Positions 10,725-27,706 of a stretch of 64,000 nt of DNA are shown in pieces. Within the stretch, counting starts at the first letter, position 1. Each line of letters begins with the position of its first letter. Position numbers and translations under genes: made by a program. The stretch lies in IMG/VR virus record IMGVR_UViG_3300047548_001122, positions 62,001 through 126,000 of that record; one strand, 5' to 3'. The notes below the pieces were generated by a model. It saw nothing but the letters and a program-made list of their open reading frames with translations. It was not told the DNA's origin and searched no databases.

Positions 10725-10733
10725 GGAGAAAAA

Positions 10734-11858: not shown

Positions 11859-11859
11859 T

Positions 11860-12189: not shown

Positions 12190-13055
12190 TGGCTATAAAA
12201 GATTTTTTTGTTTTTCATGAATCCAATAAACCAATAATTACAAATTCTGGTGTTAATGTTTTATACTTCACAAATAAATGCAACTTAGCCTGCACTTATT
12301 GTTATGAGGATTTGCCTGGAAGACCCCCTCAAATTTTAAGTAAAGAGGATATTGTTCGTATTGTAGACGAAGTTATTTTGAGAGAGGATCCTGAAAAGCA
12401 AACACTATTTGTTTTATTTGGTGGTGAACCCACTCTAGAATGGGAAAATGTTTGTTTTGCTATGGAATATGCCTATAATAAAAAGAAAAACGTACACTTT
12501 AATATGACAACAAATGGTATAAAATACCTAAGTGAAAAATTTATAATTGAGACTAAAAATAACTTTTTCTACAAAAATAGAATGTTGTCTATAGATGTTA
12601 GTTTTGATGGCATCGGCAATAAAGACAGAATTTTCCATAATGGAAAAGAATCAACTTCTTCAATGTTGACTGTTTTTAAGAATTTGTTAGTAAATAACTT
12701 TAGATATAGACTCAGATATACTGTACATAAATATAATGTTAAATGGTGTTATGATGACATACACAAATTAATAAAGACGTTTAAACCTGAAAGATTGATA
12801 ACTTCAGTTGCATGGGACACTCTAGGTGAAGATGATTTAGTTAAGTTACAGGAAGTAAAAGACAAGTTTAGAGATGACTGGATAAATAGAAGAATAGACG
12901 TTCCAGTATGTGATATATTTTGTGACATGTGTAACGGATGCTCGGAGACAAAAGATATCAAAACCTATTTTACCAATGAAGGTAATGTAACAACTCATAA
13001 AAATTTTGAGAGTACGCCCAAATTTAAGGATTTTAAAGAAAAGGTAATGTTATGA
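12189..13055 (+). CDS. Radical SAM protein with short Cys-rich C-terminus
   Basis: CNLACTYC, LFGGEPTL, TTNG, SIDVSFDG; C-terminal CDIFCDMCNGC instead of a full SPASM domain. Confidence 0.88.
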   Translation: MAIKDFFVFHESNKPIITNSGVNVLYFTNKCNLACTYCYEDLPGRPPQILSKEDIVRIVDEVILREDPEKQTLFVLFGGEPTLEWENVCFAMEYAYNKKKNVHFNMTTNGIKYLSEKFIIETKNNFFYKNRMLSIDVSFDGIGNKDRIFHNGKESTSSMLTVFKNLLVNNFRYRLRYTVHKYNVKWCYDDIHKLIKTFKPERLITSVAWDTLGEDDLVKLQEVKDKFRDDWINRRIDVPVCDIFCDMCNGCSETKDIKTYFTNEGNVTTHKNFESTPKFKDFKEKVML

Positions 13056-13441
13056 ATAAAGATGAAATCGTAATTGAAAAATTGAAAAATATTGCTCAGA
13101 TTATCAATGATATCAAAGAGTATGACCAACCTCTTGCTGACTTAATTTGGATGGGTTTCGATACTTCTATGAGTTTAGCTAAATCCGTTTATGAAAATTC
13201 CGAGAAAGATGAACCTATTGATATTTCGGTTTATTTGGAACAAATGTGTGAAGTTCTAGGTATAAATCTGGAACAATTAATTTTAGATATAGTTCAGAAA
13301 AATAACACGAATGAAGTTGCTGAAAAAGAACCTGACACTGAAACTCTAGATTTCATAACTTCTGACATGGATGATTATGAAAAATTTTTGGCCAAAAATT
13401 CAGCGAAAAATAATCTAGATTTCTTATCTAAGGAAATATAA
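13052..13441 (+). CDS. Hypothetical acidic protein (129 aa)
   Basis: ATGA overlap with the upstream gene; Asp/Glu-rich; no recognised motif. Confidence 0.6.
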   Translation: MNKDEIVIEKLKNIAQIINDIKEYDQPLADLIWMGFDTSMSLAKSVYENSEKDEPIDISVYLEQMCEVLGINLEQLILDIVQKNNTNEVAEKEPDTETLDFITSDMDDYEKFLAKNSAKNNLDFLSKEI

Positions 13442-13445
13442 AAAA

Positions 13446-14045
13446 ATGGCTAGTTTAGGACAATTCTTTAATACCGATTCGCCGGTGTATGGCCAGACAA
13501 AACCGGCTGGTGTTCACAGAAAAATATCGAAAACATTTCAAGGAACTTTTGCAACTAATGCCGTTTCTTACGGTCTTTCTGAAGTAAATACCAGTACTAC
13601 TATATCATCATCGTTTTTCAATTCTTTAATTACTAATGCAAAATCTGAAAGAGTTAGAAGGGGAAAGGCAGATGCTAATATAAGTGCCGTTTCATCAGGC
13701 ACAGCTATATCAGCTACCACTCTTAATGATATTAGAAATGCATATAATGTTACAGATGATAGGGTAAATCAAGCGTGGGACGATTGGAGTGGAGCTAATG
13801 CTAATTCTCCAACCGAAACAGCTTTACCAACAAAAACAGTTTGGGGTCCTACAGCAGCTCCATCTAATGTTCCAGGAAGCGTATCTTCAGGTACAAAAAT
13901 TACCGCGAGTGTTATCAATAGTTTAGTGAATTCTTTAAATGCAGCAGGAGCAGTTTGTACCTGTAATTGTAATTACTGTACCTGTAACTGTAACTATTGC
14001 ACTTGTAACTGTAATTATTCCTGTACGTGTAATTGTAATTATTAA
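13446..14045 (+). CDS. Protein with C-terminal Cys-rich (CTCNCNY)x4 repeat; candidate radical SAM substrate or metal-binding protein
   Basis: 199 aa, Ser/Thr/Ala/Asn-rich body with no Cys until the last 29 residues, which hold 12 Cys; SD AAGGA upstream. Confidence 0.8.
   Translation: MASLGQFFNTDSPVYGQTKPAGVHRKISKTFQGTFATNAVSYGLSEVNTSTTISSSFFNSLITNAKSERVRRGKADANISAVSSGTAISATTLNDIRNAYNVTDDRVNQAWDDWSGANANSPTETALPTKTVWGPTAAPSNVPGSVSSGTKITASVINSLVNSLNAAGAVCTCNCNYCTCNCNYCTCNCNYSCTCNCNY
13956..14042 (+). repeat. Coding tandem repeat: 4 x 21-bp unit encoding CTCNCNY (one Ser inserted before unit 4)
   Basis: tgtacctgtaattgtaattac / tgtacctgtaactgtaactat / tgcacttgtaactgtaattat / tcc / tgtacgtgtaattgtaattat. 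Units differ only at synonymous positions. Confidence 0.95.
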
Positions 14046-14047
14046 AA

Positions 14048-14518
14048 ATGTTATTTGATTTAAATCACTTGGAAGAAACTGAAATGTCTTACATTAGACA
14101 CTTCAACCATGGTATGATATTAGGTATGTGGTTGTTTTTTTGTTTTTGCGCTTCTCTTGTTTATTGTTTTTTTCCAATTAAATTCTTACAAGATTTTATA
14201 AGTGAAAGAATAAAAACAATGTATCATGGATTAATGTTGAGATGGTTCGAAGATGATAATTTTAATCCACTCAAACCAAAAAAAGATGCAATAAGAGAAA
14301 AAGTCTATAAAAAAGAATATATTGAAAATATACAAAAAGGATTAGTTAAACCATTTGGTAATTTCAGAACATCTTATGAACTGTTAGTTACTTCTTTAGC
14401 GAGTGTAATACATTCTACTATACCTCAGATATTAGTTCATGTTGCAGCTATGAATGTGGTAAGGTTGTATTTTAGTATTAAAATTGTGGAGAAATCATAT
14501 GAAGCAAAACAAAGTTGA
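14048..14518 (+). CDS. Hypothetical membrane-associated protein (possibly DUF6356-like)
   Basis: HLEETEMSYIRHF...hydrophobic segment...FFP, plus a second similar segment ending IHSTIP. Family call is from memory of the motif only. Confidence 0.5.
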   Translation: MLFDLNHLEETEMSYIRHFNHGMILGMWLFFCFCASLVYCFFPIKFLQDFISERIKTMYHGLMLRWFEDDNFNPLKPKKDAIREKVYKKEYIENIQKGLVKPFGNFRTSYELLVTSLASVIHSTIPQILVHVAAMNVVRLYFSIKIVEKSYEAKQS

Positions 14519-14903
14519 AATTGAAGGTGTAGATGCAAACACTTACGCAGGAAAAGCTATTCAAGCGTGTAAGTTAAAAGCTAGAGGTATATTTGGAGAC
14601 GAACTTTTAACATTTAAATTGTTGGATTTTGTGAGTTTTTTCTTATTAAATAATGAATTGTCATCCAAAGGATATACTATTACGGAAAATAACAGAGAAG
14701 AAGTTTATATTAAAATTATAGAAACTGGCGACATTCAATTGATTAATGATTTGGAAAAATACATTTCTCTTAGAGATTCTTTAAAAGAATTGGAAAAAAA
14801 GAAAGAAGAATATTATAATATTGTGGAAAAGTTGTCTAGTTTACAAGATTTCAATGATGAAGTCAGTATAAATGAAATAGTAGAGTCGTATTTAAGGAGA
14901 TAA
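14499..14903 (+). CDS. Hypothetical helical protein (134 aa)
   Basis: In-frame ATG at 14499 preceded by GGAG is preferred to 14484; charged helical C-terminus. Confidence 0.6.
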   Translation: MKQNKVEIEGVDANTYAGKAIQACKLKARGIFGDELLTFKLLDFVSFFLLNNELSSKGYTITENNREEVYIKIIETGDIQLINDLEKYISLRDSLKELEKKKEEYYNIVEKLSSLQDFNDEVSINEIVESYLRR

Positions 14904-14905
14904 AC

Positions 14906-15892
14906 TTGTTAATACTTTTAAATGGACCTAGAAGTGTACATTTAAGATCCATATCTAGAGCTATTATAGATCAACAAAAAAATTGGAGTTTTAAAGATTA
15001 TACCGTTAAATATAAAAATAACGGTTTTATTGTTTTGGATTCCAACCAAAACAACGTCTATTGTAATAATCCGGAGTTGGGAAACTTAAACCACGACATT
15101 TTTATAAGTTGTTTTACTCAAGAAGAGTTTGATGAGAAATCATTATTGATCGATGAGATAAACGATTTTAATAACAAAATAGATGAAGATATAAAGAAAA
15201 ACCATTTTATAGATTCTTGGCCAGTTACAGATTTTTCCTTTTTATTCGATCACGATTTTAATTTCGAACAAGATGAAACCTATGAAAAAATATTAGAAAC
15301 TTATAGAAACAGTTCAGATACGGATGATATTTGGACAGGAAGATTTTCCATTTCTTTTATAGAAAAACTAAAATCTGATATAGGATCAGAAAATTTAAAA
15401 ATCATAAACTTTATAAGAAATCCAAGTTCTTGTGCATTTACGAACCATTTGGATGAAAATTGTAAAATCGAACATGCAAACATATCAATTTTAAATATGT
15501 TCCTTGTCTCAAAATTACCCGAAACAATTAATGTGAAATATGAAGAATTTTTGAATGATAAAAAGTTTTCTTTGGACGGTTTGGAAATACATTTACCTGA
15601 ATTGATTGTGAATCATAATGGTTTAATTAGTGAGTATGAATTTTCAAAATATGATTCCGATTTAATAAATGATGAAATCATTAATAAACTGAATGATGTT
15701 TATTCCAATTTTAATTTAGTGGAAGTTATGAAAGATGGGTTAAGTGTAGACAATACCTCAGAAATTTACAATGAATTTTTCACGAATTTACAACAAAGAA
15801 TAAAAGAAGATATAAAACAAAGTATACCAGAAAACTTTTTTGTTGAATTGAATTATTCACCCCTATCACTAGAACAAATTATATCGAAATAA
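14906..15892 (+). CDS. Hypothetical protein with P-loop/sulfotransferase-like features
   Basis: N-terminal ILLNGPRS strand-loop, KIINFIRNP and VKYEEF resemble the sulfotransferase RNP/RDP and YEDL motifs; TTG start. Confidence 0.45.
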   Translation: MLILLNGPRSVHLRSISRAIIDQQKNWSFKDYTVKYKNNGFIVLDSNQNNVYCNNPELGNLNHDIFISCFTQEEFDEKSLLIDEINDFNNKIDEDIKKNHFIDSWPVTDFSFLFDHDFNFEQDETYEKILETYRNSSDTDDIWTGRFSISFIEKLKSDIGSENLKIINFIRNPSSCAFTNHLDENCKIEHANISILNMFLVSKLPETINVKYEEFLNDKKFSLDGLEIHLPELIVNHNGLISEYEFSKYDSDLINDEIINKLNDVYSNFNLVEVMKDGLSVDNTSEIYNEFFTNLQQRIKEDIKQSIPENFFVELNYSPLSLEQIISK

Positions 15893-15898
15893 AATTTT

Positions 15899-16777
15899 GT
15901 GTTTTTATTGAACTTGAGGAAGTATGATTTAGTTATTACCACATCATACAATTTTAAATTTGGTATTTGTGGTCATTTATTTGAAATGATAGAATATTAT
16001 TGGGCAATAAAAAATTGGACAAATCTAAATCCATGCATATTATTATCCGATGGAACAACTTTAGAAGAGTTTAATAAAGCTCTAGAAAACAAATATGATG
16101 ATTTGGTGATTGAAAATGTAATATATCATCCTTTCCCCAAAGTATTAATAACAAAAAATCTATTAATAGTTGACGGTTCTTCTCGATTTGATAGAACCGA
16201 AATATATTCGGACAACTTTTTCTTACTACGTTGTCACGAAAATGAATACGATTTTTACTCCAAAAATAAATCAAATTGTTACCTGTTTCAAGATTTTGAA
16301 ATCTATGAAGATATACCGGACAAAATAACAGTAATAGATTATAAGAAAAAAATATTATACAATAAATTTAAAAAAATTGAAGGCGCAGTTGATGATGCCG
16401 CAATGTTTTATTTGACTGACGTTAGTAGATTCATGTCCGAAGATGATGTTAAACACGTTATACAAAAATACCAATTTCCAGATAATGTAATTTTTACCAA
16501 TAAAACAGAACTGTATAAATCAATTAAAACTTATAAAGTTCCCGTTGAGAATATGTGGAATAAATTTTCAAAATATGTTTATACGAAATTGCCTGGAAAA
16601 AGAGATTGTTCAAGTAGATTCATTCTGGAATGTATGCATTATGGAAAAGAAGTTATCTACGACATAGATTACTTTGACAAATCTTTAGAAGTTAGAAAAA
16701 AAGATGGTGTCACCAACACTTCTTTAGGAAAAGGCGATCTTTTGGTCGAATATCTAAATGAACGAATTAAGCGTTAA
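15899..16777 (+). CDS. Hypothetical protein, possibly degenerate GT-B glycosyltransferase
   Basis: 292 aa, GTG start; C-terminal SSRFILECMHYGKEVI resembles the GT-B ExxxxGxxV donor-binding region. Confidence 0.4.
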   Translation: MFLLNLRKYDLVITTSYNFKFGICGHLFEMIEYYWAIKNWTNLNPCILLSDGTTLEEFNKALENKYDDLVIENVIYHPFPKVLITKNLLIVDGSSRFDRTEIYSDNFFLLRCHENEYDFYSKNKSNCYLFQDFEIYEDIPDKITVIDYKKKILYNKFKKIEGAVDDAAMFYLTDVSRFMSEDDVKHVIQKYQFPDNVIFTNKTELYKSIKTYKVPVENMWNKFSKYVYTKLPGKRDCSSRFILECMHYGKEVIYDIDYFDKSLEVRKKDGVTNTSLGKGDLLVEYLNERIKR

Positions 16778-17750
16778 AAAAATTAACATAGATTATGATA
16801 GGTCTATAAACAATAGAGCTAAATTGGATACAGGTAAACTATGTAATTATAAATGCGAATTCTGTTATTATAAAAATCAACTAAGTGAGAGAGATGAACT
16901 AGATAAAATTTATCAAAGAGTGGATTATTTGTTAAGTTATGGAATAACACAAATTGATTTGAGTGGTGGTGAAAGTAGTGTAGAACCTAATTGGTTTAAA
17001 ATATTAGAATACTGTCAGAATAAGTTCGAAAGAATAAGTTGTTTAAGTCACGGAGGAAAATTTAGTGATAAAGAATTTATTCAAAAGAGTTATGAATTAG
17101 GACTGAGAGAGATATTATTCAGTTTACACTGTACTGAAGAATCGATACACGATAAAATAGTTGGTAAAAAAGGTGCTTTCAAAAATTTATTGAAAGCGAT
17201 AGAAAATTGTCATGATCTTGGTATTGAAGTTAGAATTAATACAACCATATACCACGAAAACTATGATAAGATAAACACCGATTTTATCAAAAGTTTAAAT
17301 CCTTCACAAATAAATTTTATAGCTTTGAATTATTGGCAAGATAATAGTGATTTTTCTACGATAGATTATGAAAAAGTTTGTTCATATGTTTCAAATTATA
17401 TCAAAAAGTTGCATGATAAAATAGAAGTTAATGCCAGATATTTTCCGTATTGCTTCATGCCAGACGAAGAACGTTTTATTAAAAATCACTATCATCATAT
17501 CTATGATATGAAAGATTGGAATAAAGCTGTATATAATGGTCAGTTAGATACCTCTATTACTTATACACACAAACAGAAAGTGGAACAATCATTTGATGAA
17601 GCTGAAAGGTTGCGTCTTTATACTTGTTTCAAAAGTAACGAATGTTTGAATTGCAAATATTTTTATGTCTGTGATGGAATAGAAAAACAATTGAAAGGTA
17701 AAATTCAACCTAAACCCATATTAGGTGAAAAGATAAAGGTCGTATGGTAA
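16758..17750 (+). CDS. Radical SAM protein (MoaA/NifB/PqqE-like) with C-terminal Cys cluster
   Basis: CNYKCEFC, DLSGGE, FSLH; C-terminal CLNCKYFYVCDG. Confidence 0.9.
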   Translation: MNELSVKKINIDYDRSINNRAKLDTGKLCNYKCEFCYYKNQLSERDELDKIYQRVDYLLSYGITQIDLSGGESSVEPNWFKILEYCQNKFERISCLSHGGKFSDKEFIQKSYELGLREILFSLHCTEESIHDKIVGKKGAFKNLLKAIENCHDLGIEVRINTTIYHENYDKINTDFIKSLNPSQINFIALNYWQDNSDFSTIDYEKVCSYVSNYIKKLHDKIEVNARYFPYCFMPDEERFIKNHYHHIYDMKDWNKAVYNGQLDTSITYTHKQKVEQSFDEAERLRLYTCFKSNECLNCKYFYVCDGIEKQLKGKIQPKPILGEKIKVVW

Positions 17751-18415
17751 ATCCTGATTTATCGATACTTATATTGACACACAAAAGACCTTTGTTATTT
17801 GAAAGGTGTTTAACTTCGGTTATGAATCAATATTCCGAAAATATAGAGGTTTTGGTTAATAACGATAGTTCAGATATAAAAGAAATCTTTTCGGAAAATG
17901 TTAAATATTTTTATGAGAAATTTGATAGTATTTCCGAAATATACGAATTTTTGTTGAAGATGTCGAAGGGAAAATACATTTACTTTTTAGAAGATGACGA
18001 TTACTTAACGGAAGATTTTTTAAATCAGAAGTTGGATTCGGATATAATTGCTGGGAATTATTGTCCTACATATAAACCTAATAAAATTTTAGATTTAATG
18101 AATATGTTCCAAGATTCTTTATTTTTCGATAGAGTAGATTTTATAAAAAAACTAAATTTGGAACATTTACAATTAGGACAGTTTATATTTAAAAAAGATG
18201 TTATAGAAGATTTCGTTTTTGAAAAAGATAATAATGTACATAACGATATCAAACTTGTATATCATGCTTCACTGAAATGTAAAACCTTTAAAACAACCAG
18301 TAAGTTTTTTTATTATCAGACTATAGACGGTAACGACAATATATCTTTTCCCAATACTATAAAAAATATATCGGTTACCGCATCTATGGATTTTTTAAAG
18401 AACTATGAAATATAG
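17744..18415 (+). CDS. Glycosyltransferase family 2 (GT-A)
   Basis: LSILILTHKRP, EVLVNNDSS, GKYIYFLEDDD (DxD). Confidence 0.85.
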   Translation: MVNPDLSILILTHKRPLLFERCLTSVMNQYSENIEVLVNNDSSDIKEIFSENVKYFYEKFDSISEIYEFLLKMSKGKYIYFLEDDDYLTEDFLNQKLDSDIIAGNYCPTYKPNKILDLMNMFQDSLFFDRVDFIKKLNLEHLQLGQFIFKKDVIEDFVFEKDNNVHNDIKLVYHASLKCKTFKTTSKFFYYQTIDGNDNISFPNTIKNISVTASMDFLKNYEI

Positions 18416-19316
18416 CATACAACATCATAAAGATCAAGACCCAGATCATATTAACGTACATTGGGATAGCTTAACTATTTGTCAGTTAAAGTGTTCTTAT
18501 TGTTATGCTAGAAATGAGTATGGAAAAGAATGGGGTAAAATATCCAGTAAAACAATAATTGATGCTGTTTTGGATGCTCTGAATCGTAGTAGTTTAAATT
18601 TCAATTTAGGTTTGTTGGGTGGTGAACCAACTTTAGGTCCCCATTATTATTACATACTTGATTCGATTAGTAAAATGGAAAAGTTTAATTGGGTATATGT
18701 TGTAACTAATGGTGAAAAAGACTTGACAACTCATCCACATTATGATAGACTGGCTTTTCTTTTTAGTTATCATCCGGCAGATTGTACTGATCGAGATAGG
18801 TTTTTAAACAATATTCGACATATGTTGGATAGAGGTTATAAGTGTAAAGTGAATGTCATGCTCCACCACGATAAAAACTTATGGCCTAAGATTAAAGAGA
18901 TGTTTGAAATTTTGGAGAAAATTCCAAACCTTAAAGTTCATCCACATTTCCTTTACGGTAACAGTATCACCAAGTTGTTCAATTATAGAAAAGATTTTTG
19001 GGAATATTTTTCATTTTTGGAAAACTATGAAAAAGAATTGAAATATGATGATGACCTTTTTAATGATTATATCATATTCAGAGATAAATTAACGAACTTT
19101 AAAGGTTGGAGTTGTTATAATAACAATTATGAAATTGATGTTAGAGGTAACGTAGTTAAATTTTGTATGCCAAAAACAGATAATGTTAACCTCGTTCGTG
19201 ATAGGGATTTCTTTAAAAATATATCCAAAACTGTTCCTATGATTTGTCCACATAAAGCTTGCAATTGCGATGGACTCTTGAAACAATTAAAAGTAAAAAA
19301 TGAGCCAGATAGTTGA
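18405..19316 (+). CDS. Radical SAM protein with twitch-like C-terminus
   Basis: CQLKCSYC, LLGGEPT, VTNG; C-terminal CYN...KFC...CPHKACNCDG. Confidence 0.88.
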   Translation: MKYSIQHHKDQDPDHINVHWDSLTICQLKCSYCYARNEYGKEWGKISSKTIIDAVLDALNRSSLNFNLGLLGGEPTLGPHYYYILDSISKMEKFNWVYVVTNGEKDLTTHPHYDRLAFLFSYHPADCTDRDRFLNNIRHMLDRGYKCKVNVMLHHDKNLWPKIKEMFEILEKIPNLKVHPHFLYGNSITKLFNYRKDFWEYFSFLENYEKELKYDDDLFNDYIIFRDKLTNFKGWSCYNNNYEIDVRGNVVKFCMPKTDNVNLVRDRDFFKNISKTVPMICPHKACNCDGLLKQLKVKNEPDS

Positions 19317-20058
19317 ATGGGAAATTACACTTAAATGTAATTACAAATGCACTTACTGTACGAATTTGGATCCAAGTATACGACCTGAACTCGATGAAAG
19401 TAAAATAAGAGAATTTATTGCGAACTTAGGACAAAAGTATCCTGGTGTGGAAGTATTTATTTTTGGTGGTGAACCTTTTGTTCACCCTAAGATAGAATTC
19501 ATTATAAAAACTTTTAATGAACACAAAATACCTTTTGTAATTCAAACCAACTTCAGTAATTATAGTCGAGAAAAGATTCGAAAAATAACTGATCCTTTTA
19601 AGATCAATATTAGTGTTCATCCCACCGAAACTTCTATAGATGATATTGTGGAAGGACTCAAGAGCACAAACGTCAATATAAAAACGATAGATGTTATGTA
19701 TACTGGTCAAGATGCAATAAAATATTATTTTGCAGTTAAAAAAGCTATCGAACATGACAATTTATTTTTAACTCCAATTACAGATTTTGGAGATGGTTAT
19801 AGTGACAATTTACTTCTACAATACCTTGCATTGAAGAAAAAAACGGTATATAAAAATATAATTAAATTTGAAAATGTAAAAAGATTGGATCGTCAACGTA
19901 GTGAAATTTGGGCAGATCCTAATTTTAAAACTTTTGGAAAGCCCTGTTTATACAAAGATAAATATTTTTTATATTCTCCCAATTTAGAATTGTATAATTG
20001 TTGTTATAGAATAAAAGTGGACAAATTGTGTCCGAAAACAAAATGTTTTTTAATGTGA
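19300..20058 (+). CDS. Radical SAM protein (compact, twitch-like)
   Basis: WEITLKCNYKCTYC, IFGGEPF, QTN; C-terminal PC...NCC...CPKTKC. Confidence 0.88.
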   Translation: MSQIVEWEITLKCNYKCTYCTNLDPSIRPELDESKIREFIANLGQKYPGVEVFIFGGEPFVHPKIEFIIKTFNEHKIPFVIQTNFSNYSREKIRKITDPFKINISVHPTETSIDDIVEGLKSTNVNIKTIDVMYTGQDAIKYYFAVKKAIEHDNLFLTPITDFGDGYSDNLLLQYLALKKKTVYKNIIKFENVKRLDRQRSEIWADPNFKTFGKPCLYKDKYFLYSPNLELYNCCYRIKVDKLCPKTKCFLM

Positions 20059-20064
20059 TGTTAT

Positions 20065-20880
20065 ATGAGATATCTTTTAGCTGGCGCTTTCAGTAAATCA
20101 ATACCGATAATAAAATTTTTAACACATAAGTTGGTAGACAACACCAAACTTGTGGTTTATGATGGTGTGAATAAATGTAAATGGAATGGCGGAAGAATTA
20201 ATCGGGATGTTTATTATAGTGATGCGTTAATAGACTATTACTATAGTAAAGATATCAGTATTGCTCTTACGATGAGTAATCATAAAATTGATTTATCGGA
20301 TGAAACAGGAAATCACCTGCTAGAAAAATTTCACAAAGAAGGTAATGCCTTAATTATTGTTAATGATGATTTAAGGCAATACGTCAGAAAAAACTTTCCC
20401 AAATACGATTTAATTTATAGTATTACTGGTATGGGTCTGTTAAACATTCCTTTACAAGATAGTGATATTGCTTGGTATAAAGACTTGGAAAGTAAGTATG
20501 ATTGGATTGTTCCGAGATTTGAACATGTATTTGATTCTAGAGCTTCGGAGTTAGATAGAAACAAATGGGAAGTTATGTTAAATGACACTTGCGTTTGGGG
20601 TTGTAAACATTGGGATGAACATTTCAAAGCAATCGCAGATGAAAATACCGCTGGTCGTCCATATAGTAAACAGGTAGAAGAATGTTGGTTGCCAAAATTT
20701 GATTTTAATAAAGATAGTAAATATCCTCCAATGGATATCAAACCAGAAAACATGCGTAAACTTTTGGACGTTGGTGTAAGAAGTTTTAAAATTACCGGTA
20801 GAGAAATGACAGATGATGAATATTATGGTGAATTGACGAGATTCATTAATCGAAGTTTAGAGGCATTAAAAAATGGATGA
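20065..20880 (+). CDS. Peptidase U32-like (Fe-S TIM-barrel) protein
   Basis: VMLNDTCVWGC Cys motif, later C, and C-terminal GVRSFKITGR matching the U32 (S/F)LKIEGR signature. Confidence 0.6.
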   Translation: MRYLLAGAFSKSIPIIKFLTHKLVDNTKLVVYDGVNKCKWNGGRINRDVYYSDALIDYYYSKDISIALTMSNHKIDLSDETGNHLLEKFHKEGNALIIVNDDLRQYVRKNFPKYDLIYSITGMGLLNIPLQDSDIAWYKDLESKYDWIVPRFEHVFDSRASELDRNKWEVMLNDTCVWGCKHWDEHFKAIADENTAGRPYSKQVEECWLPKFDFNKDSKYPPMDIKPENMRKLLDVGVRSFKITGREMTDDEYYGELTRFINRSLEALKNG

Positions 20881-21943
20881 CTGGAAAAAAATCAAAGTCG
20901 TTCGAAAAAAAGAGGACATGCAAGTTGGCCTAATTAAGCCAGAAAAAACTTATAATGTACTGAAAATAAATGACCAAGAAGGTAGACATATCGATTATTC
21001 TGTAACATTTAGAATAACCGAAGCTTGTGATTTGAAATGTAATTATTGCCATTGGCATAGTGGTAGACACTATTCTTTTGAAGATATTATTACTAGCATT
21101 GATAATCTTTTTGTGTTCTTCAAAAAACAGAAATTCAAAAGTGTTGTTTTTTATTATCACGGTGGAGAACCAACTCGACATCCTAAATGCGTTGATATTC
21201 TAAAGTATATACACCAAAAAGGTAAAGAAACTGGAATTATAGCATATAATGAAATGCAAACCAATTTAACGATTGGTGAAGAAAAATTAAAAGATATGTT
21301 GCCGTATTGCGACATGTTCAATGTGAGTTTTCACTATCTGGAGTTGAAGAGATTGAATAAACTCAAGAACTTTGATAGTAATTGGGAACTATTAAAAAAA
21401 TTAGGTATATCCATTCATAACATGGATATTATGATGGAGAATGTAGAAAGAGGTAATCGATGGTATCAAAACAAAGTTATAGAAATAATACCAGAAGAAT
21501 TTTATGAAAGAGTCAAATACTATCTAACATATGATAAAATTGTGAATAGTGAAATGATATACGGGTTCTGCCATTATGTTTATCCGGAAGATGTGGCAGA
21601 AAAACATATGGCATTTTATAGAGAACATAATAAAACTGAACAAAAATATGAAATCGATGGAAAAATATACACAACAAATGACTTGTTTAAATTAGGTGTT
21701 GATGCTCGAGGTTGGAAGTGTGCGGCAGGACAAGAAAGTATTACAATTAATGGTGATGGAAATGTTTTTAATTGTGGTATACACATGACGAATTATATAA
21801 GAGAAAGTGCTCCAGAAAAGCCATACACAAATTTAGTTCACGATGAGGCAGCTGTAACTAAAATGTCGATATTATATAAAACTGGAACTGTTTGTAGATG
21901 GGATTATTGTGGTGGCGATTTTTATTTGAGTAGAAAACCATGA
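20873..21943 (+). CDS. Radical SAM protein with twitch-like C-terminus
   Basis: FRITEACDLKCNYC, YHGGEPT, QTN; C-terminal CAAG...GNVFNC...CRWDYCGGD. Confidence 0.9.
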   Translation: MDDWKKIKVVRKKEDMQVGLIKPEKTYNVLKINDQEGRHIDYSVTFRITEACDLKCNYCHWHSGRHYSFEDIITSIDNLFVFFKKQKFKSVVFYYHGGEPTRHPKCVDILKYIHQKGKETGIIAYNEMQTNLTIGEEKLKDMLPYCDMFNVSFHYLELKRLNKLKNFDSNWELLKKLGISIHNMDIMMENVERGNRWYQNKVIEIIPEEFYERVKYYLTYDKIVNSEMIYGFCHYVYPEDVAEKHMAFYREHNKTEQKYEIDGKIYTTNDLFKLGVDARGWKCAAGQESITINGDGNVFNCGIHMTNYIRESAPEKPYTNLVHDEAAVTKMSILYKTGTVCRWDYCGGDFYLSRKP

Positions 21944-22560
21944 AATGCGCTATAACAGGACATACTAGAGGATTAGGCAAATCTCTCTATAATCACTTTA
22001 AAGAAAAAGGATGGGAAGTAATTGGATTTAGTACAACCAATGGATATTTTTTACCTGATGCTTTAGAAAAAGTAATTGAAGAGTCGAATGGTTGCGATTT
22101 GTTCATCAACAATACATTTGCACAGGGACATCAAATCGATCTGTTACATGCTTTGAAATATAAGGTTAAAAATATGGTTGTTTGTGGATCGATTGCTAGA
22201 ACTGAACCATTAAACGAAATACTGTATGGTGATTATGTAGACATTAAAACCGAGTTAGCAAAGTCTTGTAATATTTTAAGTATCAGTAATGACAGTAGAT
22301 TAATGAATATATTACATTTGGATTTGGGATTTTTAGAAGGTAGTGTTGAAAACATTTTAGATCCTACAGAATTTATAAGTGATTATACAATAGGTTTTAA
22401 TGATGTAATCTCCGCAATTGAATTATGGTTGTTGCATCCTAAGATTAAACAAATTGAATTTTCCTGGAAATTAACTCCTTTTTTGGAAACTAGACTTAAA
22501 CGAGCCACAAATAATCCAGATTCATTAAATAAACTTTTATCTGACATAAATGAAGCGTGA
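21940..22560 (+). CDS. Short-chain dehydrogenase/reductase-like protein
   Basis: AITGHTRGLG (TGxxxGxG), DLFINN, YxxxK (YVDIK). Confidence 0.7.
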   Translation: MKCAITGHTRGLGKSLYNHFKEKGWEVIGFSTTNGYFLPDALEKVIEESNGCDLFINNTFAQGHQIDLLHALKYKVKNMVVCGSIARTEPLNEILYGDYVDIKTELAKSCNILSISNDSRLMNILHLDLGFLEGSVENILDPTEFISDYTIGFNDVISAIELWLLHPKIKQIEFSWKLTPFLETRLKRATNNPDSLNKLLSDINEA

Positions 22561-23278
22561 ACTTTTAAAATATTCCTACGAAAATCAACTATCGCATATT
22601 CCTAGTGCGTTAAGTATGATTGATTATGTTGAAGTTTTATTTACAAGTAAACATGTAACTAAGGATGATTATATTATTATAGGAAAACCTTTTGGTTCCC
22701 AAGCTTATTATTTGATTTGGCGAAGATTAGGATATTTAAATAATATTGAAAAATTGAGTGTTGGTGTTAAACATGAAGAAATAGACTTTGTTGATTTTAG
22801 TGAAGAAACTATGGGAAATGCACTTGGTGTTTCTATAGGAGTAGCAATTTCCAATCCAGAAAAACGTGTTTGGGTGAATATAAGTGATGCTTCATTACAG
22901 ATGGGAAATACTTTAGAAGCAATACAGTTTATCGGACATAATAAAATAAAAAACATCTTTTTGACAATTGATTATAATAATGCTCAAGTTACCGGTAAAA
23001 CACAAGATGTATTGAGTGTATCTCCAGTAGTAAATATGTTTGAAAATTATGGATGGAATCTACAGATTGTGGACGGACATGAACACAGTGTTATAAAAAA
23101 ATCTTTAGATAATTTGTCTAAATTTTTACCAAATGTTATAGTGTTCCAAACCAAAAAAGGCAAATCTATTCAAAGTATGGAAAATGATGTTAAAAAGTGG
23201 CATTATAAAAAAATTGAAACGTCAGAAGAATTAGACTTTTTATTAGAAGAAATTTATCATGAGACAACAACTACATAA
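22550..23278 (+). CDS. Transketolase N-terminal (ThDP-binding) subunit, divergent
   Basis: SHIPSALS, MGNALGVSIGVA, SDASLQMG...DYNN, VDGH, TKKGK, WHY. Confidence 0.8.
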   Translation: MKRELLKYSYENQLSHIPSALSMIDYVEVLFTSKHVTKDDYIIIGKPFGSQAYYLIWRRLGYLNNIEKLSVGVKHEEIDFVDFSEETMGNALGVSIGVAISNPEKRVWVNISDASLQMGNTLEAIQFIGHNKIKNIFLTIDYNNAQVTGKTQDVLSVSPVVNMFENYGWNLQIVDGHEHSVIKKSLDNLSKFLPNVIVFQTKKGKSIQSMENDVKKWHYKKIETSEELDFLLEEIYHETTTT

Positions 23279-23735
23279 ATTCTTAAATCGTTATCCTGGT
23301 GAAGTTTATTTTTTACACTGTGATATGTGGAAATGGTTAGACTCGAACTATAAACAAATAAATTGTGGCGTACAAGAACCAAACATGGTTAACATTGCAG
23401 CAGGTTTGGCCAGCCAAGGTAAAAAAGTGATTATATACGGTGTAGCTGGATTTGTGATTTATAAAAGTTATGAACAAATAAAACTTAACATAAAAGGTTG
23501 GGCAGAAAAATACGGAAGTATAATTTTTGTAAATGCGGGTGCTAATGGAGCCTATAAAATATGTGGCAGGGGACATTTGTTAGATGATGATGAACAACTA
23601 ATGAATTCTCTCGGTATTGATTTTTATGATCCAATTGACACTTCAACCTTTATAAGAAATGTTAAAGATGGACTAAAAAGTCCTGGTGTAAGATATCTTA
23701 GACTTGGTTGGGACAACGAAGTATGGAAAAAATAG
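23259..23735 (+). CDS. Transketolase pyrimidine-binding-domain subunit (short)
   Basis: NCGVQEPNMVNIAAGLASQG, SYEQIK, GH, PGVRYLRLG; only 158 aa. Confidence 0.8.
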   Translation: MRQQLHKFLNRYPGEVYFLHCDMWKWLDSNYKQINCGVQEPNMVNIAAGLASQGKKVIIYGVAGFVIYKSYEQIKLNIKGWAEKYGSIIFVNAGANGAYKICGRGHLLDDDEQLMNSLGIDFYDPIDTSTFIRNVKDGLKSPGVRYLRLGWDNEVWKK

Positions 23736-24325
23736 TTGTTACTGGATCAACAGGATTCATAGGAAGTAATCTTTGCCTACAGTTGGAAAAAAGAGGTTTT
23801 GATGTAATAAGAATGAATCGTAGTTTTTTTCCAATTGAGTCTTGTTATAGAATTTACCATTTAGCTTGTCCATCCACAACAAAGAGAATAAACGATAATC
23901 CAACAGAAATAATGGATATAATTTTTGACAGAACTAGGCAAGCATTAGATATTTGCCGTTCTTCTTTGTTTATAAATGCCTCGACCTATGGTGTGAATTT
24001 CATTGACGAATCTAAACAATCGTGTTATAATATAGCCAAACTTTCGATGGAATACTATCTAAAATATAGTGGAATAAAGTATCTTAATTATAGATTACCT
24101 TCAGTTTATGGTGAAGGTATGCATGATGATAACTTCATAAAAAGATGTATTGACAATACCGCATATAAACCAAAAAATCCTGAACAAAAATATTTTATTT
24201 CACATATTGATGATGTGATAGAATCTCTTATAAATTTAACAGAACTTAAAATTGAAGAGACAACTTTAGGATCGATATATAAAGATTTTGGTTCAGGAAA
24301 AAGAGGATTAAAAAAATATGTCTAA
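23723..24325 (+). CDS. NAD-dependent epimerase/dehydratase (short)
   Basis: VVTGSTGFIG, YHLA, YNIAK (YxxxK), VYG; ATG at 23723 preferred. Confidence 0.8.
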   Translation: MEKIVVTGSTGFIGSNLCLQLEKRGFDVIRMNRSFFPIESCYRIYHLACPSTTKRINDNPTEIMDIIFDRTRQALDICRSSLFINASTYGVNFIDESKQSCYNIAKLSMEYYLKYSGIKYLNYRLPSVYGEGMHDDNFIKRCIDNTAYKPKNPEQKYFISHIDDVIESLINLTELKIEETTLGSIYKDFGSGKRGLKKYV

Positions 24326-25583
24326 TATAGAAAACATTGTTGTTATTGGTGCAGGAACTACAGGATATTTGACAGTCTTTCATTTATGTGAAACTTATCC
24401 GAATAAAAAAATTACTTGGATTTATCCCGAAGAAAATCAACCTATAGGTGTTGGAGAAGCTATAATACCAGATGTTAGTAAGTTTTTGAATAATTTTGGA
24501 ATAACACATAAAGACATTTTAAAGAATTGTAACGGCACATTAAAATTTGGCATTTATTTAAAAGGTTGGAATACGCCAGGCGAAGATTTTACTTTTCCTT
24601 TTGGATACGAATCGGTTAATATCAAACATAATTCGGCAAGTCAAGATCGAATTATGAAAACTCATAAGATACCGAAAGGTATATTTGAATATCAAAACAT
24701 ATCGACACATTTTAGAGCTACAGAATTGTTGATGTACATGGATAAAGTAAAAGAAAAATATTTAAATTTGAAAGTCGTTAGGAAAGAAGTAACATTAAAT
24801 GAGATTAAAGATAGTTATGATTTAGTTATAGACTGTACTGGATTTGAAAGAAAAATAAGTTATCTACCAGATAATTTTAAAAACATTAACGATAAGATAC
24901 CAAACAATCAAGTTTTTCTTTTTAGGCATAATTATACCGATAGAGAAAAACAGTGTGTTCCTTATACGGTTGCTGAAGCAATGAATTATGGATGGTGTTT
25001 TAATATACCTTTGAGAAATGAACTGGCGTGTGGTTATGTACACGATAATAAATTTGATGTTACAGATGAATATATTCAGTATTTGGAAAAAAAGTTTAAC
25101 ATAAAAGTTCAACCAGAGCAATTGAAAAAATTAAAGATGATAACTGGTAGAAACAAAGTACACTTAAAAGATAATGTTGTTGCTATGGGACTTTCATCCT
25201 GTTTCATAGAACCCTTAGAATCTACTGGTTTATATTTGGTAACTAGTTCTTTGAGAAAGCTCTGCGACTACATTGATGAAAAAATTACTGAAAATGAATA
25301 TAACTTTTTTATTAATGAAGAATTTGATACAATTACCGATTTTATAGTCGAACATTATAAGTTTTCCAAGAGGAGTAACGATTATTGGAATTTTTACAAA
25401 AGCGTAAAAACTAAAAAACGTACAATTAATATTTTTCCCAATTCTGGTTGGGATACTATAAGAAGTGGTTTTTTACCTGAAGTTAAAAGACCTACAGAAT
25501 CTTTGGATGGAAAAGAATTGATAGAAATACATAGAGGCAAACCTTTTCATGAATGGATATTGGAGGAAGAAAATTATATATGA
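24318..25583 (+). CDS. Flavin-dependent halogenase, tryptophan-halogenase (PrnA-like) family
   Basis: GAGTTG, IGVGEA, TLKFGI (catalytic Lys region), DCTGF, WCFNIPL, FIEPLESTG. Confidence 0.85.
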   Translation: MSNIENIVVIGAGTTGYLTVFHLCETYPNKKITWIYPEENQPIGVGEAIIPDVSKFLNNFGITHKDILKNCNGTLKFGIYLKGWNTPGEDFTFPFGYESVNIKHNSASQDRIMKTHKIPKGIFEYQNISTHFRATELLMYMDKVKEKYLNLKVVRKEVTLNEIKDSYDLVIDCTGFERKISYLPDNFKNINDKIPNNQVFLFRHNYTDREKQCVPYTVAEAMNYGWCFNIPLRNELACGYVHDNKFDVTDEYIQYLEKKFNIKVQPEQLKKLKMITGRNKVHLKDNVVAMGLSSCFIEPLESTGLYLVTSSLRKLCDYIDEKITENEYNFFINEEFDTITDFIVEHYKFSKRSNDYWNFYKSVKTKKRTINIFPNSGWDTIRSGFLPEVKRPTESLDGKELIEIHRGKPFHEWILEEENYI

Positions 25584-26503
25584 ATAATTTAATTTTAGGT
25601 GGTGCTGGGTTTATAGGTCAACATTTAACTCATAAATTATTGAAAACTCGCCAACAGAGAGTAACAATTATTGATAATCTTTCCACCAGTAAAATAAATC
25701 TTGATGAATTTTCCGAATATAAAAATCTTTTTAGTTTTATACATGCCGATATTCAAAGTTTGGAGGATAAACAGTTACTTAAATTGATGAGGGATAATAA
25801 TAGAGTTTTTCATTTTGCTGGTAGTGTTGGAGTGGAACACATCGACAAAAATCCAAAAGAAACACTATTCAATAATGTTTCCCTTACAAATAAACTTTTA
25901 CCTCTTTTTAGAGAATCTAAAAGACATGTGATTTTTTCTAGTACAAGTGAGGTTTATGGAAATGGACCATTTAATGAGGAAGATTCTTGTAACATTGGTC
26001 CTAGCAATAAATTAAGATGGGGTTATGCTGCCAGTAAATTGATGACAGAATTTTTGTTGAATGCTAGTGAAATGCCTTCAACTATATTTCGTTTTTTTAA
26101 CATTGTTGGTCCAGGACAATTATCCGACTATGGTATGGTTTTACCAAGATTTGTGGAGTCTGCAAAACGAAATGAGGATTTAATTGTTTATGGAACAGGA
26201 GAACAAATACGCTGTTTTTTTCATATTGATGATGCGACAGATGCTATAATCAAATGCAGTGGTTTTAAAAATGAACTATTCAATATTGGTAATGACAATC
26301 CTGTTACGATAAACGAACTTGCAAAAAAAGTAATAGAAATTAGCGGTTCTAACAGTAAAATTATTCACGTTCCTTATGAAAAAGCATTCAGTAATAATCA
26401 TCAAGACATTCAAACCAGAATTCCTGATATTACTAAACTTAGAGAAAAAACAGGGTTTAAACCTAAACACGATTTAGAAAAAATAATAATGGATATGTTA
26501 TGA
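25580..26503 (+). CDS. NAD-dependent nucleotide-sugar epimerase/dehydratase or decarboxylase
   Basis: LGGAGFIG, FSSTSEVYG, YAASK, RFFNIVGP, GTGEQIRCFFHIDD, PDITK; ATG at 25580 preferred. Confidence 0.9.
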   Translation: MNNLILGGAGFIGQHLTHKLLKTRQQRVTIIDNLSTSKINLDEFSEYKNLFSFIHADIQSLEDKQLLKLMRDNNRVFHFAGSVGVEHIDKNPKETLFNNVSLTNKLLPLFRESKRHVIFSSTSEVYGNGPFNEEDSCNIGPSNKLRWGYAASKLMTEFLLNASEMPSTIFRFFNIVGPGQLSDYGMVLPRFVESAKRNEDLIVYGTGEQIRCFFHIDDATDAIIKCSGFKNELFNIGNDNPVTINELAKKVIEISGSNSKIIHVPYEKAFSNNHQDIQTRIPDITKLREKTGFKPKHDLEKIIMDML

Positions 26504-27673: not shown

Positions 27674-27678
27674 ACAAA

Positions 27679-27685: not shown

Positions 27686-27706
27686 TATTAGATAGGAGAT
27701 TTTAAG

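Follow-up and report, generated by a model that had tools for sequence, protein, structure and literature searches.

A radical-SAM and glycosyltransferase gene block of a T4-like phage, putatively involved in decoration of a cysteine-repeat fibre protein

Background

The genome of Campylobacter phage CP220 carries many radical-SAM (rSAM) genes, which have been unexplained since 2010, although earlier authors proposed host-metabolism or capsule-degrading roles (PMC2853527, PMC3322345). Among the characterised enzymes with related architecture, SPASM/twitch rSAMs are mostly peptide maturases, whereas BlsE is a twitch rSAM that decarboxylates a glucuronic-acid nucleoside, and all characterised U32 enzymes hydroxylate aromatic or heteroaromatic carbons, not sugars (10.1101/587956). 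Here we consider a block of rSAM, glycosyltransferase (GT) and accessory genes in a 214-kb T4-like phage (IMG/VR record IMGVR_UViG_3300047548_001122). The window is the analysed stretch of 64,000 nucleotides, positions 62,001 to 126,000 of that record, and all coordinates below refer to it.

A preliminary description had proposed that the block, with four rSAMs having shorter C-terminal Cys clusters than the upstream set, constitutes an oxygen-independent pathway that builds or tailors an unusual sugar transferred by the GTs, and that it appears separate from the peptide module.

Gene content of the block

The observed arrangement was confirmed: positions 15899-22560 contain eight co-directional, mostly overlapping genes.

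15899-16777, plus strand: GT-B-like putative glycosyltransferase (292 aa)
16758-17750, plus strand: rSAM-1 (330 aa), marker of the system
17744-18415, plus strand: GT2 (GT-A fold) glycosyltransferase (223 aa)
18405-19316, plus strand: rSAM-2 (303 aa)
19300-20058, plus strand: rSAM-3 (252 aa)
20065-20880, plus strand: U32-fold protein by structure model (271 aa), probable [4Fe-4S] hydroxylase of the O2-independent type
20873-21943, plus strand: rSAM-4 (356 aa)
21940-22560, plus strand: short SDR (206 aa), lineage-specific accessory gene

The junctions are, in order, an overlap of 20 nt (16758-16777), overlaps of 7, 11 and 17 nt, a 6-nt gap (20059-20064), and overlaps of 8 and 4 nt; the next gene, starting at 22550, overlaps the SDR by 11 nt. 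These are real genes rather than chance ORFs, as seven of the eight are conserved in order in relatives down to about 40% identity and show strong purifying selection (dN/dS 0.04-0.12) in comparison with a 78%-identical relative, L013. The SDR has no homologue in the related loci, and in L013 a 2OG-Fe(II) oxygenase is found at that place.

In the Pfam search, Radical_SAM scored above its cut-off for rSAM-1 (67 bits), rSAM-2 (37.6), rSAM-3 (51.8) and rSAM-4 (43.4). Each enzyme has CX3CX2C and four or five conserved C-terminal Cys in the family alignments (twitch-like), compared to eight C-terminal Cys in each of the two SPASM-type enzymes upstream; hence the shorter C-terminal clusters are real. 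In rSAM-1 the CX3CX2C motif is at 29/33/36, and the auxiliary Cys 232/296/299/305 are invariant. In rSAM-2 the motif is at 26/30/33, with invariant Cys 237, 254, 281, 286 and 288 (twitch-like CX16C ... CX4CXC). In rSAM-3 it is at 13/17/20, with conserved Cys 216, 234, 244 and 249, and in rSAM-4 at 52/56/59, with conserved Cys 283, 301, 341 and 346 (CX17C ... CX4C).

None of the enzymes reaches the cut-off of any named family, including QueE, MoaA, viperin and BtrN. For rSAM-1 (model pLDDT 92) the best PDB fold match is BlsE, followed by SkfB and viperins. The best solved relative of rSAM-2 is MoaA (E 1.6e-6), while its best NCBIfam hit, a QueE model, scores 36 bits against a cut-off of 260. 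Solved relatives of rSAM-3 are weak (7wzv at 1.4e-7, MoaA, CteB, and BtrN at 1e-3), and for rSAM-4 no solved relative was found at E<=0.01. These fold and profile matches are generic, as SkfB, AlbA, AhbC/D, MoaA and viperin score about as well as BlsE, with TM about 0.55-0.68.

The GT2 was identified by Glycos_transf_2 (PF00535, 41.8 bits, E 1.4e-10); it has a DXD motif at 84-86, and the best solved relative of its profile is chondroitin synthase (4.4e-12), followed by GalT1 and PglI, so that it resembles glycan-extending transferases. The first gene has no Pfam hit and matches phrog_24441; its GT-B-like assignment rests on Atlas neighbours, whose models align with GT4/GT1 transferases. Its homologues were found in 14 of 16 distinct loci that hold the rSAM-1 gene.

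The Peptidase_U32 hit of the 20065-20880 product is below the cut-off (18.1 against 22.4 bits), but a model with pLDDT 83 has TrhP1/TrhP/MJ1657/UbiU as the best Swiss-Prot fold matches (TM by query 0.58-0.65). Four Cys (38, 176, 180, 207) are conserved in the alignment; for comparison, the cluster ligands of UbiV are C39/C180/C193/C197 (10.1101/587956). The short SDR has only weak NCBIfam SDR hits, but carries TGxxxGxG at residue 6 and YxxxK at 99 and falls among short phage SDR clusters in the Atlas, where 572-aa SDR+rSAM fusions also exist.

The surrounding island and its distribution

The block belongs to a larger island of about 19 kb (8843-28021), flanked by tail-fibre-like genes. Besides the eight genes, it includes the following features, the enzymes and the Fe-S carrier among them identified by Pfam hits.

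8843-9580, plus strand: short UDP-glucose/GDP-mannose-dehydrogenase-like gene at the island's start
9618-13055, plus strand: first module, with rSAM-SPASM 9618-10724, rSAM 10734-11858, small ORF 11812-12189 and rSAM 12189-13055
13446-14045, plus strand: Cys-heptad-repeat protein of the fibre type, with the C-terminus (CTCNCNY)x4; likely acceptor or substrate
14484-15892, plus strand: two conserved proteins of unknown function (14484-14903, a core member, phrog_25260; 14906-15892, conserved in phage relatives)
22550-23735, plus strand: split transketolase-like ThDP enzyme (N part 22550-23278, C part 23259-23735), best solved relative the split-chain transketolase 6yak
23708-28021: SDR 23708-24325, flavin (Trp) halogenase homologue 24318-25583, UXS/epimerase-like SDR 25553-26503, PIG-L deacetylase 26500-27144, CE4 deacetylase 27119-27736 (minus strand) and IscA/HesB Fe-S carrier 27707-28021

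The whole island is syntenic in many uncultured T4-like phages at 40-98% amino-acid identity. The same core is found in chromosomes of Halobacteriovorax, Peredibacter (complete genome) and a Bdellovibrionales MAG, comprising two SPASM-type rSAMs, the Cys-repeat protein, the 14484-like gene, the GT-B-like gene, rSAM-1 (40-45% identity), an SDR, PIG-L and CE4; the Peredibacter locus also has four further rSAMs and a DegT sugar aminotransferase. Homologues of the Cys-repeat protein occur in all well-covered loci, and in every long or complete record examined the repeat gene is present. On the other hand, five fragmentary phage or MAG contigs (L022, L024, L026, L027, L032), which are 12-53% complete, carry second-module genes without a Cys-repeat gene within the fetched flanks.

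Starting from the repeat DNA, we found 28 viral stretches, of which 22 have first-module rSAMs adjacent to the Cys-repeat gene, 14 have the GT-B-like gene and 10-11 have rSAM-1. Some phages have up to four tandem repeat-protein genes. Peptidase_S74, a fibre-chaperone domain, scores above the cut-off directly after the repeat in three phage relatives and in the adjoining ORF in Peredibacter. The claim that the block is separate from the peptide module is not supported: both modules are contiguous and co-conserved with the Cys-repeat protein in uncultured phages and Bdellovibrionota chromosomes and co-occur scattered in CP220, and the GT-B-like gene and rSAM-1 belong to the conserved core of that system.

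More distant homologues of rSAM-1 (29-32% identity) in Thermodesulfobacteriota lie between GT2 genes and a Wzm/Wzt-type polysaccharide ABC exporter, in the layout GT2-rSAM-rSAM-GT2-GT2-rSAM-Wzt-Wzm. Nitrospirota shows the same layout by ORF sizes, and Geobacter the same set of three rSAM-1 paralogues.

Possible function

Taken as a whole, the earlier sugar-pathway interpretation is partly supported. Its link to sugar and glycan chemistry remains the leading reading, by context and not by assay: two GTs are present, the island is bracketed by a UDP-glucose-dehydrogenase-like gene and a UDP-GlcA-decarboxylase/epimerase-like SDR, with the PIG-L and CE4 deacetylases in addition, the distant rSAM-1 homologues have a glycan context, and the best solved fold match of rSAM-1 is BlsE. 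Membership in known cofactor, tRNA or DNA-modification families would have counted against it, and no enzyme fell into such a family. The term oxygen-independent is only partly apt, as the rSAM and U32 enzymes fit it, but the same island carries the flavin halogenase homologue and L013 has the 2OG-Fe(II) oxygenase, both being O2-using classes.

We tentatively suggest that the eight genes are a co-translated block of a single system built around the small fibre-type protein with the (CTCNCNY)n repeat. In this view, the upstream SPASM-type rSAMs would work on the repeat itself, while the block would supply glycan chemistry. The UDP-Glc-dehydrogenase-like gene, the UXS/epimerase-like SDRs and the split transketolase would provide activated sugar intermediates; the four twitch-type rSAMs, the U32-type Fe-S hydroxylase and the short SDR would tailor the sugar, or the nascent glycan, by radical or redox steps; the GT-B-like and GT2 enzymes would transfer it, most likely onto the fibre protein; the PIG-L and CE4 enzymes would de-N-acetylate it; and the IscA-type carrier would help load the eight Fe-S enzymes. 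The gene identities at the superfamily level, conservation, synteny, co-occurrence with the Cys-repeat fibre and the glycan context of distant homologues follow from the data, whereas every substrate, the order of steps and the acceptor are inferred, and no direct evidence links any enzyme to a sugar or to the fibre. A complex prediction of rSAM-1 with the GT-B-like protein and the repeat tail gave no answer. Pfam found no initiating phosphoglycosyltransferase, flippase or polymerase in the island, which argues for a soluble or protein acceptor rather than host LPS or capsule.

Alternatively, all seven rSAMs, together with the U32 hydroxylase and the halogenase homologue, could act directly on the Cys-heptad repeat in a RiPP-like multi-step maturation (thioether or other cross-links, epimerisation, hydroxylation or halogenation of Tyr), the GTs merely adding ordinary sugars. 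This is less likely but possible, since the genes co-occur with the repeat protein everywhere coverage allows, the peptide maturases SkfB, AlbA, SuiB and PapB are among the nearest relatives, rSAM-2 paralogues sit inside the first module in relatives (4167-5057 of L013), multiple repeat-protein genes resemble the multiple precursors of RiPP loci, and a structural neighbour cluster of the U32-like family carries PqqD. Moreover, the hydroxylation of aromatic carbons by U32 enzymes fits the Tyr, present once per heptad, better than a sugar. However, none of the four block rSAMs has an N-terminal RRE/PqqD extension (CX3CX2C starts at residues 13-52, with no PqqD hit), distant rSAM-1 homologues sit in exopolysaccharide-type loci with no such repeat protein, the seven rSAMs are mutually very divergent, only the first-module three grouping together, and the SDR+rSAM fusions and the many nucleotide-sugar genes would be left without a role.

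It seems unlikely that the module works independently of the fibre, essentially the separate pathway proposed initially, making a free amino-sugar, nucleoside or aminoglycoside-like small molecule or a glycan that remodels the host cell surface during infection (an auxiliary metabolic function). The set of GT-B, PIG-L deacetylase, twitch rSAM and SDR, plus DegT in Peredibacter, does mirror aminoglycoside and thiol-cofactor logic such as BtrM/BtrD/BtrN and MshA/MshB, CP220 clusters carry an amidinotransferase, and the five contigs mentioned above lack a nearby repeat gene; but these contigs are fragments, the island contains, by Pfam, no transporter, flippase, polymerase or lipid-carrier transferase, and it sits among fibre genes, occurring in predatory bacteria next to a fibre gene with an S74 chaperone. 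Hypermodification of nucleic acid, with the U32-type enzyme hydroxylating a pyrimidine C5 in DNA or tRNA and the GTs glycosylating it, with rSAM tailoring, as in T4-hmC-glucosylation-like defence evasion, is very unlikely. Characterised U32 enzymes make ho5U and ho5C in RNA (work of Kimura and Sakai cited in 10.1101/587956), one weak Atlas neighbour cluster of the GT-B-like protein carries the T4 glucosyltransferase family (rank 89, score 0.90), and relatives such as CP220 do hypermodify DNA. Nevertheless, the QueE score of rSAM-2 is far below the cut-off, the complete genome lacks QueC, TGT/DpdA, thymidylate-synthase/dCMP-hydroxymethylase family and T4 glucosyltransferase genes, and the island lies among fibre genes, not nucleotide-metabolism genes, and is present in bacterial chromosomes beside a fibre gene.

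Comparison with CP220

Thirteen island genes have homologues in CP220, where they are scattered. These include the Cys-repeat protein gp140, the GT-B-like gp184 (30% identity) and the rSAM-1 homologue gp163 (43%), as well as gp019 (dehydrogenase-like gene), gp136, gp023 and gp099 (first module), gp015 (14484-14903), gp072 and gp141 (split transketolase, gp141 being next to gp140), and gp158, gp157 and gp156 (23708-28021 region). In contrast, and counting against the suggested fibre-glycan system, the GT2, rSAM-2, rSAM-3, rSAM-4 and U32 genes have no clear CP220 counterpart, and, as a point against nucleic-acid hypermodification, the dADG of CP220 is explained by its own QueC/D/E/FolE genes, which have no counterpart in the phage considered here.

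Organisation of the eight-gene block

The 214,237-bp IMG/VR virus record, of which the window covers bases 62001-126000, has direct terminal repeats and is rated complete. A genome-wide ORF comparison shows a T4-like myovirus, as the terminase, portal, major capsid, sheath, DNA polymerase, helicase and clamp loader are 25-39% identical to those of Campylobacter phage CP220. A cyanophage origin was considered and dropped, since there is no psbA. The genome has seven radical SAM (rSAM) genes, all between window positions 9618 and 21943.

Region 15899-22560 contains eight ORFs on the + strand, whose junctions are overlaps of 20, 7, 11 and 17 nt, one 6-nt gap, and then overlaps of 8 and 4 nt. Four of the products are radical SAM proteins, here numbered rSAM-1 to rSAM-4 in gene order, and one is a GT2; the remaining three are GT-B-like, U32-like and SDR-like. 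Against a 78%-identical relative, dN/dS is 0.04-0.12 for seven genes, these values being approximate, as dS is saturated. The preliminary description had presented this block as four non-SPASM/twitch rSAMs, with shorter C-terminal Cys clusters than the upstream set, interleaved with glycosyltransferases, U32-like and SDR genes, and this observation is confirmed. A blastn search of the region and of the neighbouring fibre genes against the phage collection yielded nothing useful, and a scan for sigma-70 promoters and terminators was at the background level. In the whole window, the T4 late-promoter core TATAAATA occurs only twice (48697, 50340), against 12.9 +/- 3.7 expected from shuffles, and neither copy lies in the island to which the block belongs.

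Family assignment of the encoded proteins

All four rSAMs score 37.6-67.2 bits with the radical SAM model (PF04055), against a cut-off of 29.5. The CX3CX2C motifs are situated at residues 29-36, 26-33, 13-20 and 52-59 of rSAM-1 to rSAM-4, respectively, and are invariant in the alignment of each family. None of the four hits the SPASM domain in Pfam (PF13186; seven Cys and two auxiliary clusters, CX9-15GX4C ... CX2CX5CX3C ... C), and each has only 4-5 conserved C-terminal Cys, whereas the two upstream SPASM-type enzymes have 8 each, and the one starting at 9618 does hit SPASM. The conserved Cys correspond to a truncated-SPASM, twitch-like arrangement with a single predicted auxiliary cluster, that is, a CX9-17(G)X4C pair plus 1-3 further Cys. 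In rSAM-2 these are C237-X16-C254 with G248, followed by C281/C286/C288; in rSAM-4, C283-X17-C301, followed by C341/C346; in rSAM-3, C216-X17-C234, followed by C244/C249; and in rSAM-1, C232 plus C296-X2-C299-X5-C305. As the CX3CX2C motif starts within 13-52 residues of the N-terminus and there is no PqqD hit, these enzymes do not carry the N-terminal PqqD-like RRE domain of RiPP maturases, although a stand-alone RRE among the small ORFs remains possible.

It had been proposed beforehand that falling into a known cofactor or tRNA/DNA-modification family, for example a QueE-like one, would speak against a sugar pathway. We observed that no rSAM approaches any NCBIfam equivalog cut-off, and NCBIfam gave no family-level assignment for any of them: the best QueE score is 36.4 bits against a cut-off of 260.1, viperin scores 62 against 180, and MoaA, 61 against 325. 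In addition, the complete genome has no QueC or TGT. The 7-deazaguanine and hm-pyrimidine routes of DNA modification were both rejected.

The seven rSAMs of the island are mutually very divergent, so each probably does a different job. The model of rSAM-1 (pLDDT 92) has BlsE (cytosylglucuronate decarboxylase) as the best solved fold match, at TM 0.56 and 19% identity, followed closely by SkfB and viperins. This is a resemblance only, and among reviewed proteins AhbC/AhbD, AlbA, MoaA and viperins score alike. In profile searches of solved structures, rSAM-2 is nearest to MoaA, rSAM-3 is nearest to an unnamed 4Fe-4S protein (PDB entry 7wzv), with MoaA, CteB and BtrN (E 1e-3, for rSAM-3 only) following, and rSAM-4 has no solved relative. 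These matches place the enzymes in the MoaA/viperin/SPASM-twitch sector, but do not fix their substrates.

The GT2 protein scores 41.8 bits with PF00535, against a cut-off of 23.3, and has an invariant E83-D84-D85-D86 stretch with the DXD motif; its best solved relative is chondroitin synthase. The product of 15899-16777 is GT-B-like by indirect evidence only. It has no hit in Pfam, NCBIfam or solved sequences, and the models that align with GT4/GT1 proteins (TM 0.6-0.7) are those of neighbouring Atlas clusters, not of this protein itself.

The U32-like protein scores 18.1 bits with the Pfam Peptidase_U32 model, below the cut-off of 22.4, and the profile search of solved structures gave nothing for its family. 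Its model (pLDDT 83), however, has TrhP1, TrhP, MJ1657 and UbiU as the top Swiss-Prot fold matches (TM 0.58-0.65). Four Cys (38, 176, 180, 207) are conserved in ten homologues, which recalls the UbiV ligand set C39/C180/C193/C197, although the spacing differs. The product of 21940-22560 carries both the TGxxxGxG cofactor motif and the catalytic YxxxK motif, and Atlas features and structure place it among short phage SDRs, but its HMM scores are far below the cut-off, and there is no Pfam hit.

The surrounding island

The block is part of a larger island flanked by tail-fibre-like genes. In the window order, the island comprises the following features, all on one strand except for the CE4 deacetylase:

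8843: a short UDP-Glc-dehydrogenase-like gene
9618-13055: three rSAMs, two of them SPASM-type (the first module)
13446-14045: a 199-aa protein ending in (CTCNCNY)x4 (the Cys-repeat protein)
14048-15892: genes without a functional assignment, including a DUF6356 membrane-like gene (14048-14518)
15899-22560 (+): the eight genes of the block (the second module)
22550-23735: a split transketolase
23708-24325: an SDR
24318-25583: a flavin halogenase homologue
25553-26503: a UXS/epimerase-like SDR
26500-27736: PIG-L (26500-27144) and CE4 (27119-27736, minus strand) deacetylases
27707-28021: an IscA/HesB-type Fe-S carrier

As called, the ORF of the CE4 deacetylase overlaps both neighbours (26500-27144 and 27707-28021) by about 26-30 nt, whereas in CP220 and Peredibacter the homologue is co-directional with the SDR. 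The flavin halogenase homologue has a strong tryptophan-halogenase-family hit (E 5e-65), is conserved at 40-50% in relatives, and in several of them is placed between the two transketolase halves; it needs O2, unlike its Fe-S neighbours. The terminal Fe-S carrier, as well as a glutaredoxin found between the first-module rSAMs of a relative (locus L031, 3641-3952), are plausibly helpers for loading eight Fe-S enzymes.

The island has a lower GC content (26-32% against 33-38%) and a strong positive GC skew. When window 8001-28000 is compared with the flanking structural genes, the GC content is 0.27-0.32 against 0.33-0.41, and the positive skew (0.12-0.27) is much stronger, which suggests a separate history or separate expression constraints.

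Homologous loci in phages

A search with rSAM-1 retrieved 16 viral loci. In those at 78%, 50% and 40% identity the whole island is syntenic, with the first and second modules contiguous, and the same holds on 203-kb and 346-kb metagenomic contigs. The 78%-identical relative (locus L013) has an extra rSAM, a paralogue of rSAM-2, inside the first module (4167-5057), and, in place of the SDR at 21940, a 2OG-Fe(II) oxygenase, a gene of no assigned function and a second U32-like gene (15192-17243), that is, a variable accessory cassette within a conserved frame. A pattern search for the Cys repeat in five distant contigs found none, but as these records are only 12-53% complete, the absence is uninformative.

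rSAM-1 is 43% identical to gp163 of Campylobacter phages CP220, CPt10 and CP21. A full comparison yields CP220 homologues of 13 island genes, scattered over that genome: gp015, gp019 (UDPGDH), gp023, gp099 and gp136 (first-module rSAMs), gp072 and gp141 (split transketolase), gp140 (the Cys-repeat protein, whose 21-nt DNA repeats are annotated in the record), gp156, gp157 and gp158 (CE4, PIG-L and SDR, respectively), gp163 (rSAM-1) and gp184 (GT-B-like, 30% identity). For GT2, rSAM-2, rSAM-3, rSAM-4 and the U32-like gene no clear counterparts were found; the jackhmmer profiles of rSAM-2, rSAM-3 and rSAM-4 merged all rSAMs and could not assign CP220 orthologues. The 11-12 rSAM genes of these phages were called "highly unusual" in 2010 and have no assigned role in the papers found (PMC2853527, PMC3322345), nor did our literature searches yield a paper assigning a function to this gene set. 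The dADG DNA modification of CP220 is explained by separate Que genes, which are absent here.

Homologous loci in bacteria

In a scan of one genome per species, we found rSAM-1 homologues at 40-45% identity in two Halobacteriovorax genomes, the complete Peredibacter chromosome and a Bdellovibrionales MAG. These loci again hold two SPASM-type rSAMs, a Cys-repeat protein (CxCNxDC...), a homologue of the gene at 14484, the GT-B-like gene, rSAM-1, an SDR, PIG-L and CE4. The Peredibacter locus also has four more rSAMs and a DegT sugar aminotransferase, whereas the MAG adds GT2, rSAM-2, two U32-like genes and the transketolase. In Peredibacter (locus L036) the system lies directly downstream of a gene for a 945-aa multihaem cytochrome c (1380-4217); this is an ordinary chromosomal context, with no other phage genes in the 21 kb read.

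More distant homologues (29-32%) in Thermodesulfobacteriota, Nitrospirota and Geobacter come as three paralogues. In the Thermodesulfobacteriota locus they are interleaved with three GT2 genes, next to an ABC-2 (Wzm/Wzt-type) exporter. That locus is typical of exopolysaccharide synthesis and has no Cys-repeat gene; Nitrospirota repeats the layout by ORF sizes.

The Cys-repeat protein

In relatives, the repeat is followed directly by SDxRLK and a Peptidase_S74 intramolecular chaperone domain, which is above the Pfam cut-off in three phages and in the adjoining Peredibacter ORF; hence we describe the protein as fibre-type. The window's copy (13446-14045) ends at ...CNCNY, exactly at the residue before that domain, and the DUF6356 membrane-like gene follows instead. 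This lineage seems to encode the "already cleaved" form.

A reciprocal scan that started from the DNA of the repeat found 28 viral stretches, of which 22 have first-module rSAM homologues, 14, the GT-B-like gene, and 10-11, rSAM-1, as far as the short flanks reach. One related phage (locus L123, 4721-7551) has four tandem Cys-repeat genes (190-237 aa), each ending with the repeat plus a short SDExxK...EY stub. They are followed by an 88-aa ORF that looks like the remainder of the S74 chaperone; this would be a split, possibly trans-acting chaperone with multiple substrates.

Interpretation

The gene block is real, conserved and part of one system centred on the Cys-heptad fibre-type protein. 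So the earlier claim that the block is separate from the peptide module is not supported, whereas its link to glycan chemistry remains the best reading, and the preliminary interpretation is therefore supported only in part. While the existence, conservation and common system of the genes rest on the analysis itself, all substrates are inferred, as are the binding of the auxiliary clusters, the hydroxylase chemistry of the U32-like protein and the glycosylation of the virion. The glycan reading is based on six considerations. Two GTs are present, the GT-B assignment being indirect, and the GT2 is nearest to glycan-extending enzymes. Nucleotide-sugar genes bracket the island, distant rSAM-1 homologues lie in a glycan context, BlsE is the top fold match of rSAM-1, and SDR+rSAM fusions exist in phages. 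Finally, Pfam found no lipid-carrier transferase, flippase or polymerase in the island, which points to a protein or soluble acceptor.

The main alternative is that the second-module Fe-S enzymes also act on the repeat itself. It cannot be excluded. U32 enzymes are known only as hydroxylases of aromatic carbons, and the heptad has a Tyr. A complex prediction of rSAM-1, the GT-B-like protein and the repeat tail gave no answer (score 0.00) and is not used as evidence either way. Production of a free metabolite, a role at the host surface, or modification of nucleic acids are less likely.

A bolder view, which we consider less likely than not, is that T4-like phages and predatory Bdellovibrionota share an undescribed kind of receptor-binding fibre, whose tip would be a cysteine heptad repeat that is cross-linked and then decorated with a radical-tailored sugar by up to eight Fe-S enzymes. 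In this view, the four twitch rSAMs and the U32 enzyme would each catalyse chemistry without precedent on a protein-bound glycan or on the repeat. This would also explain the many rSAM genes of Campylobacter phages, unexplained since 2010.

If the best reading holds, it gives a testable function to the unusually many rSAM genes of CP220 and CPt10, which are cultured biocontrol phages, and would tie that function to a defined protein, gp140. It would show that phages and predatory bacteria use the same elaborate maturation machinery for an adhesion fibre, and would open four uncharacterised twitch rSAM families and a U32-type hydroxylase to enzymology. The families are abundant in metagenomes, with 259 and 270 clusters at 90% identity found for two of them, and the cultured carriers (CP220 with C. 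jejuni, Halobacteriovorax, Peredibacter) make the question experimentally tractable.

Comparison with described systems

Twitch-domain rSAM enzymes that tailor sugars or nucleoside sugars (BlsE, BtrN, AprD4, NeoN) are likewise small (250-360 aa), with one auxiliary-cluster Cys set and no peptide-recognition domain, and are encoded next to GTs, SDRs and PIG-L-type deacetylases. However, the identity is only 13-21%, no family model is reached, and equally good matches go to peptide and tetrapyrrole enzymes; moreover, the host is a phage, and the likely acceptor is a protein rather than an antibiotic scaffold. The SPASM/twitch RiPP maturases (SkfB, AlbA, PapB, CXXX-repeat maturases) are also Fe-S radical enzymes encoded beside a Cys-rich repeat substrate, and some phages carry multiple precursor-like genes. 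Here, the inferred substrate is a fibre-type protein of about 200 aa with an S74 chaperone, not a leader-core peptide, no RRE domain was found in the four enzymes, and the second-module enzymes have only 4-5 C-terminal Cys.

The U32 family of O2-independent hydroxylases (UbiU/UbiV, TrhP, RlhA) shares the TIM-barrel fold predicted for the U32-like protein, and one of the four conserved Cys lies far upstream, as in UbiV. The Cys spacing, on the other hand, is C38...C176-X3-C180-X26-C207, against CXnCX12CX3C in UbiV, and no partner subunit is evident. In phage-encoded glycosylation of virion proteins, as in mycobacteriophages, phage GTs lie next to structural genes, and in fibres matured by S74 intramolecular chaperones, such as endosialidase and T5 pb1, the C-terminal chaperone is shared with the fibre-type protein considered here, where it begins with SDxRxK. 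These systems are not known to have radical SAM, U32 or ThDP enzymes or a Cys-heptad repeat.

The radical SAM gene set of the Campylobacter Firehammervirus phages (CP220, CPt10, CP21, IBB_35) contains direct homologues of rSAM-1, the GT-B-like gene and other island genes, and both are T4-like myoviruses. CP220 additionally has the 7-deazaguanine genes, and its homologues are scattered over the genome, rather than forming one operon.
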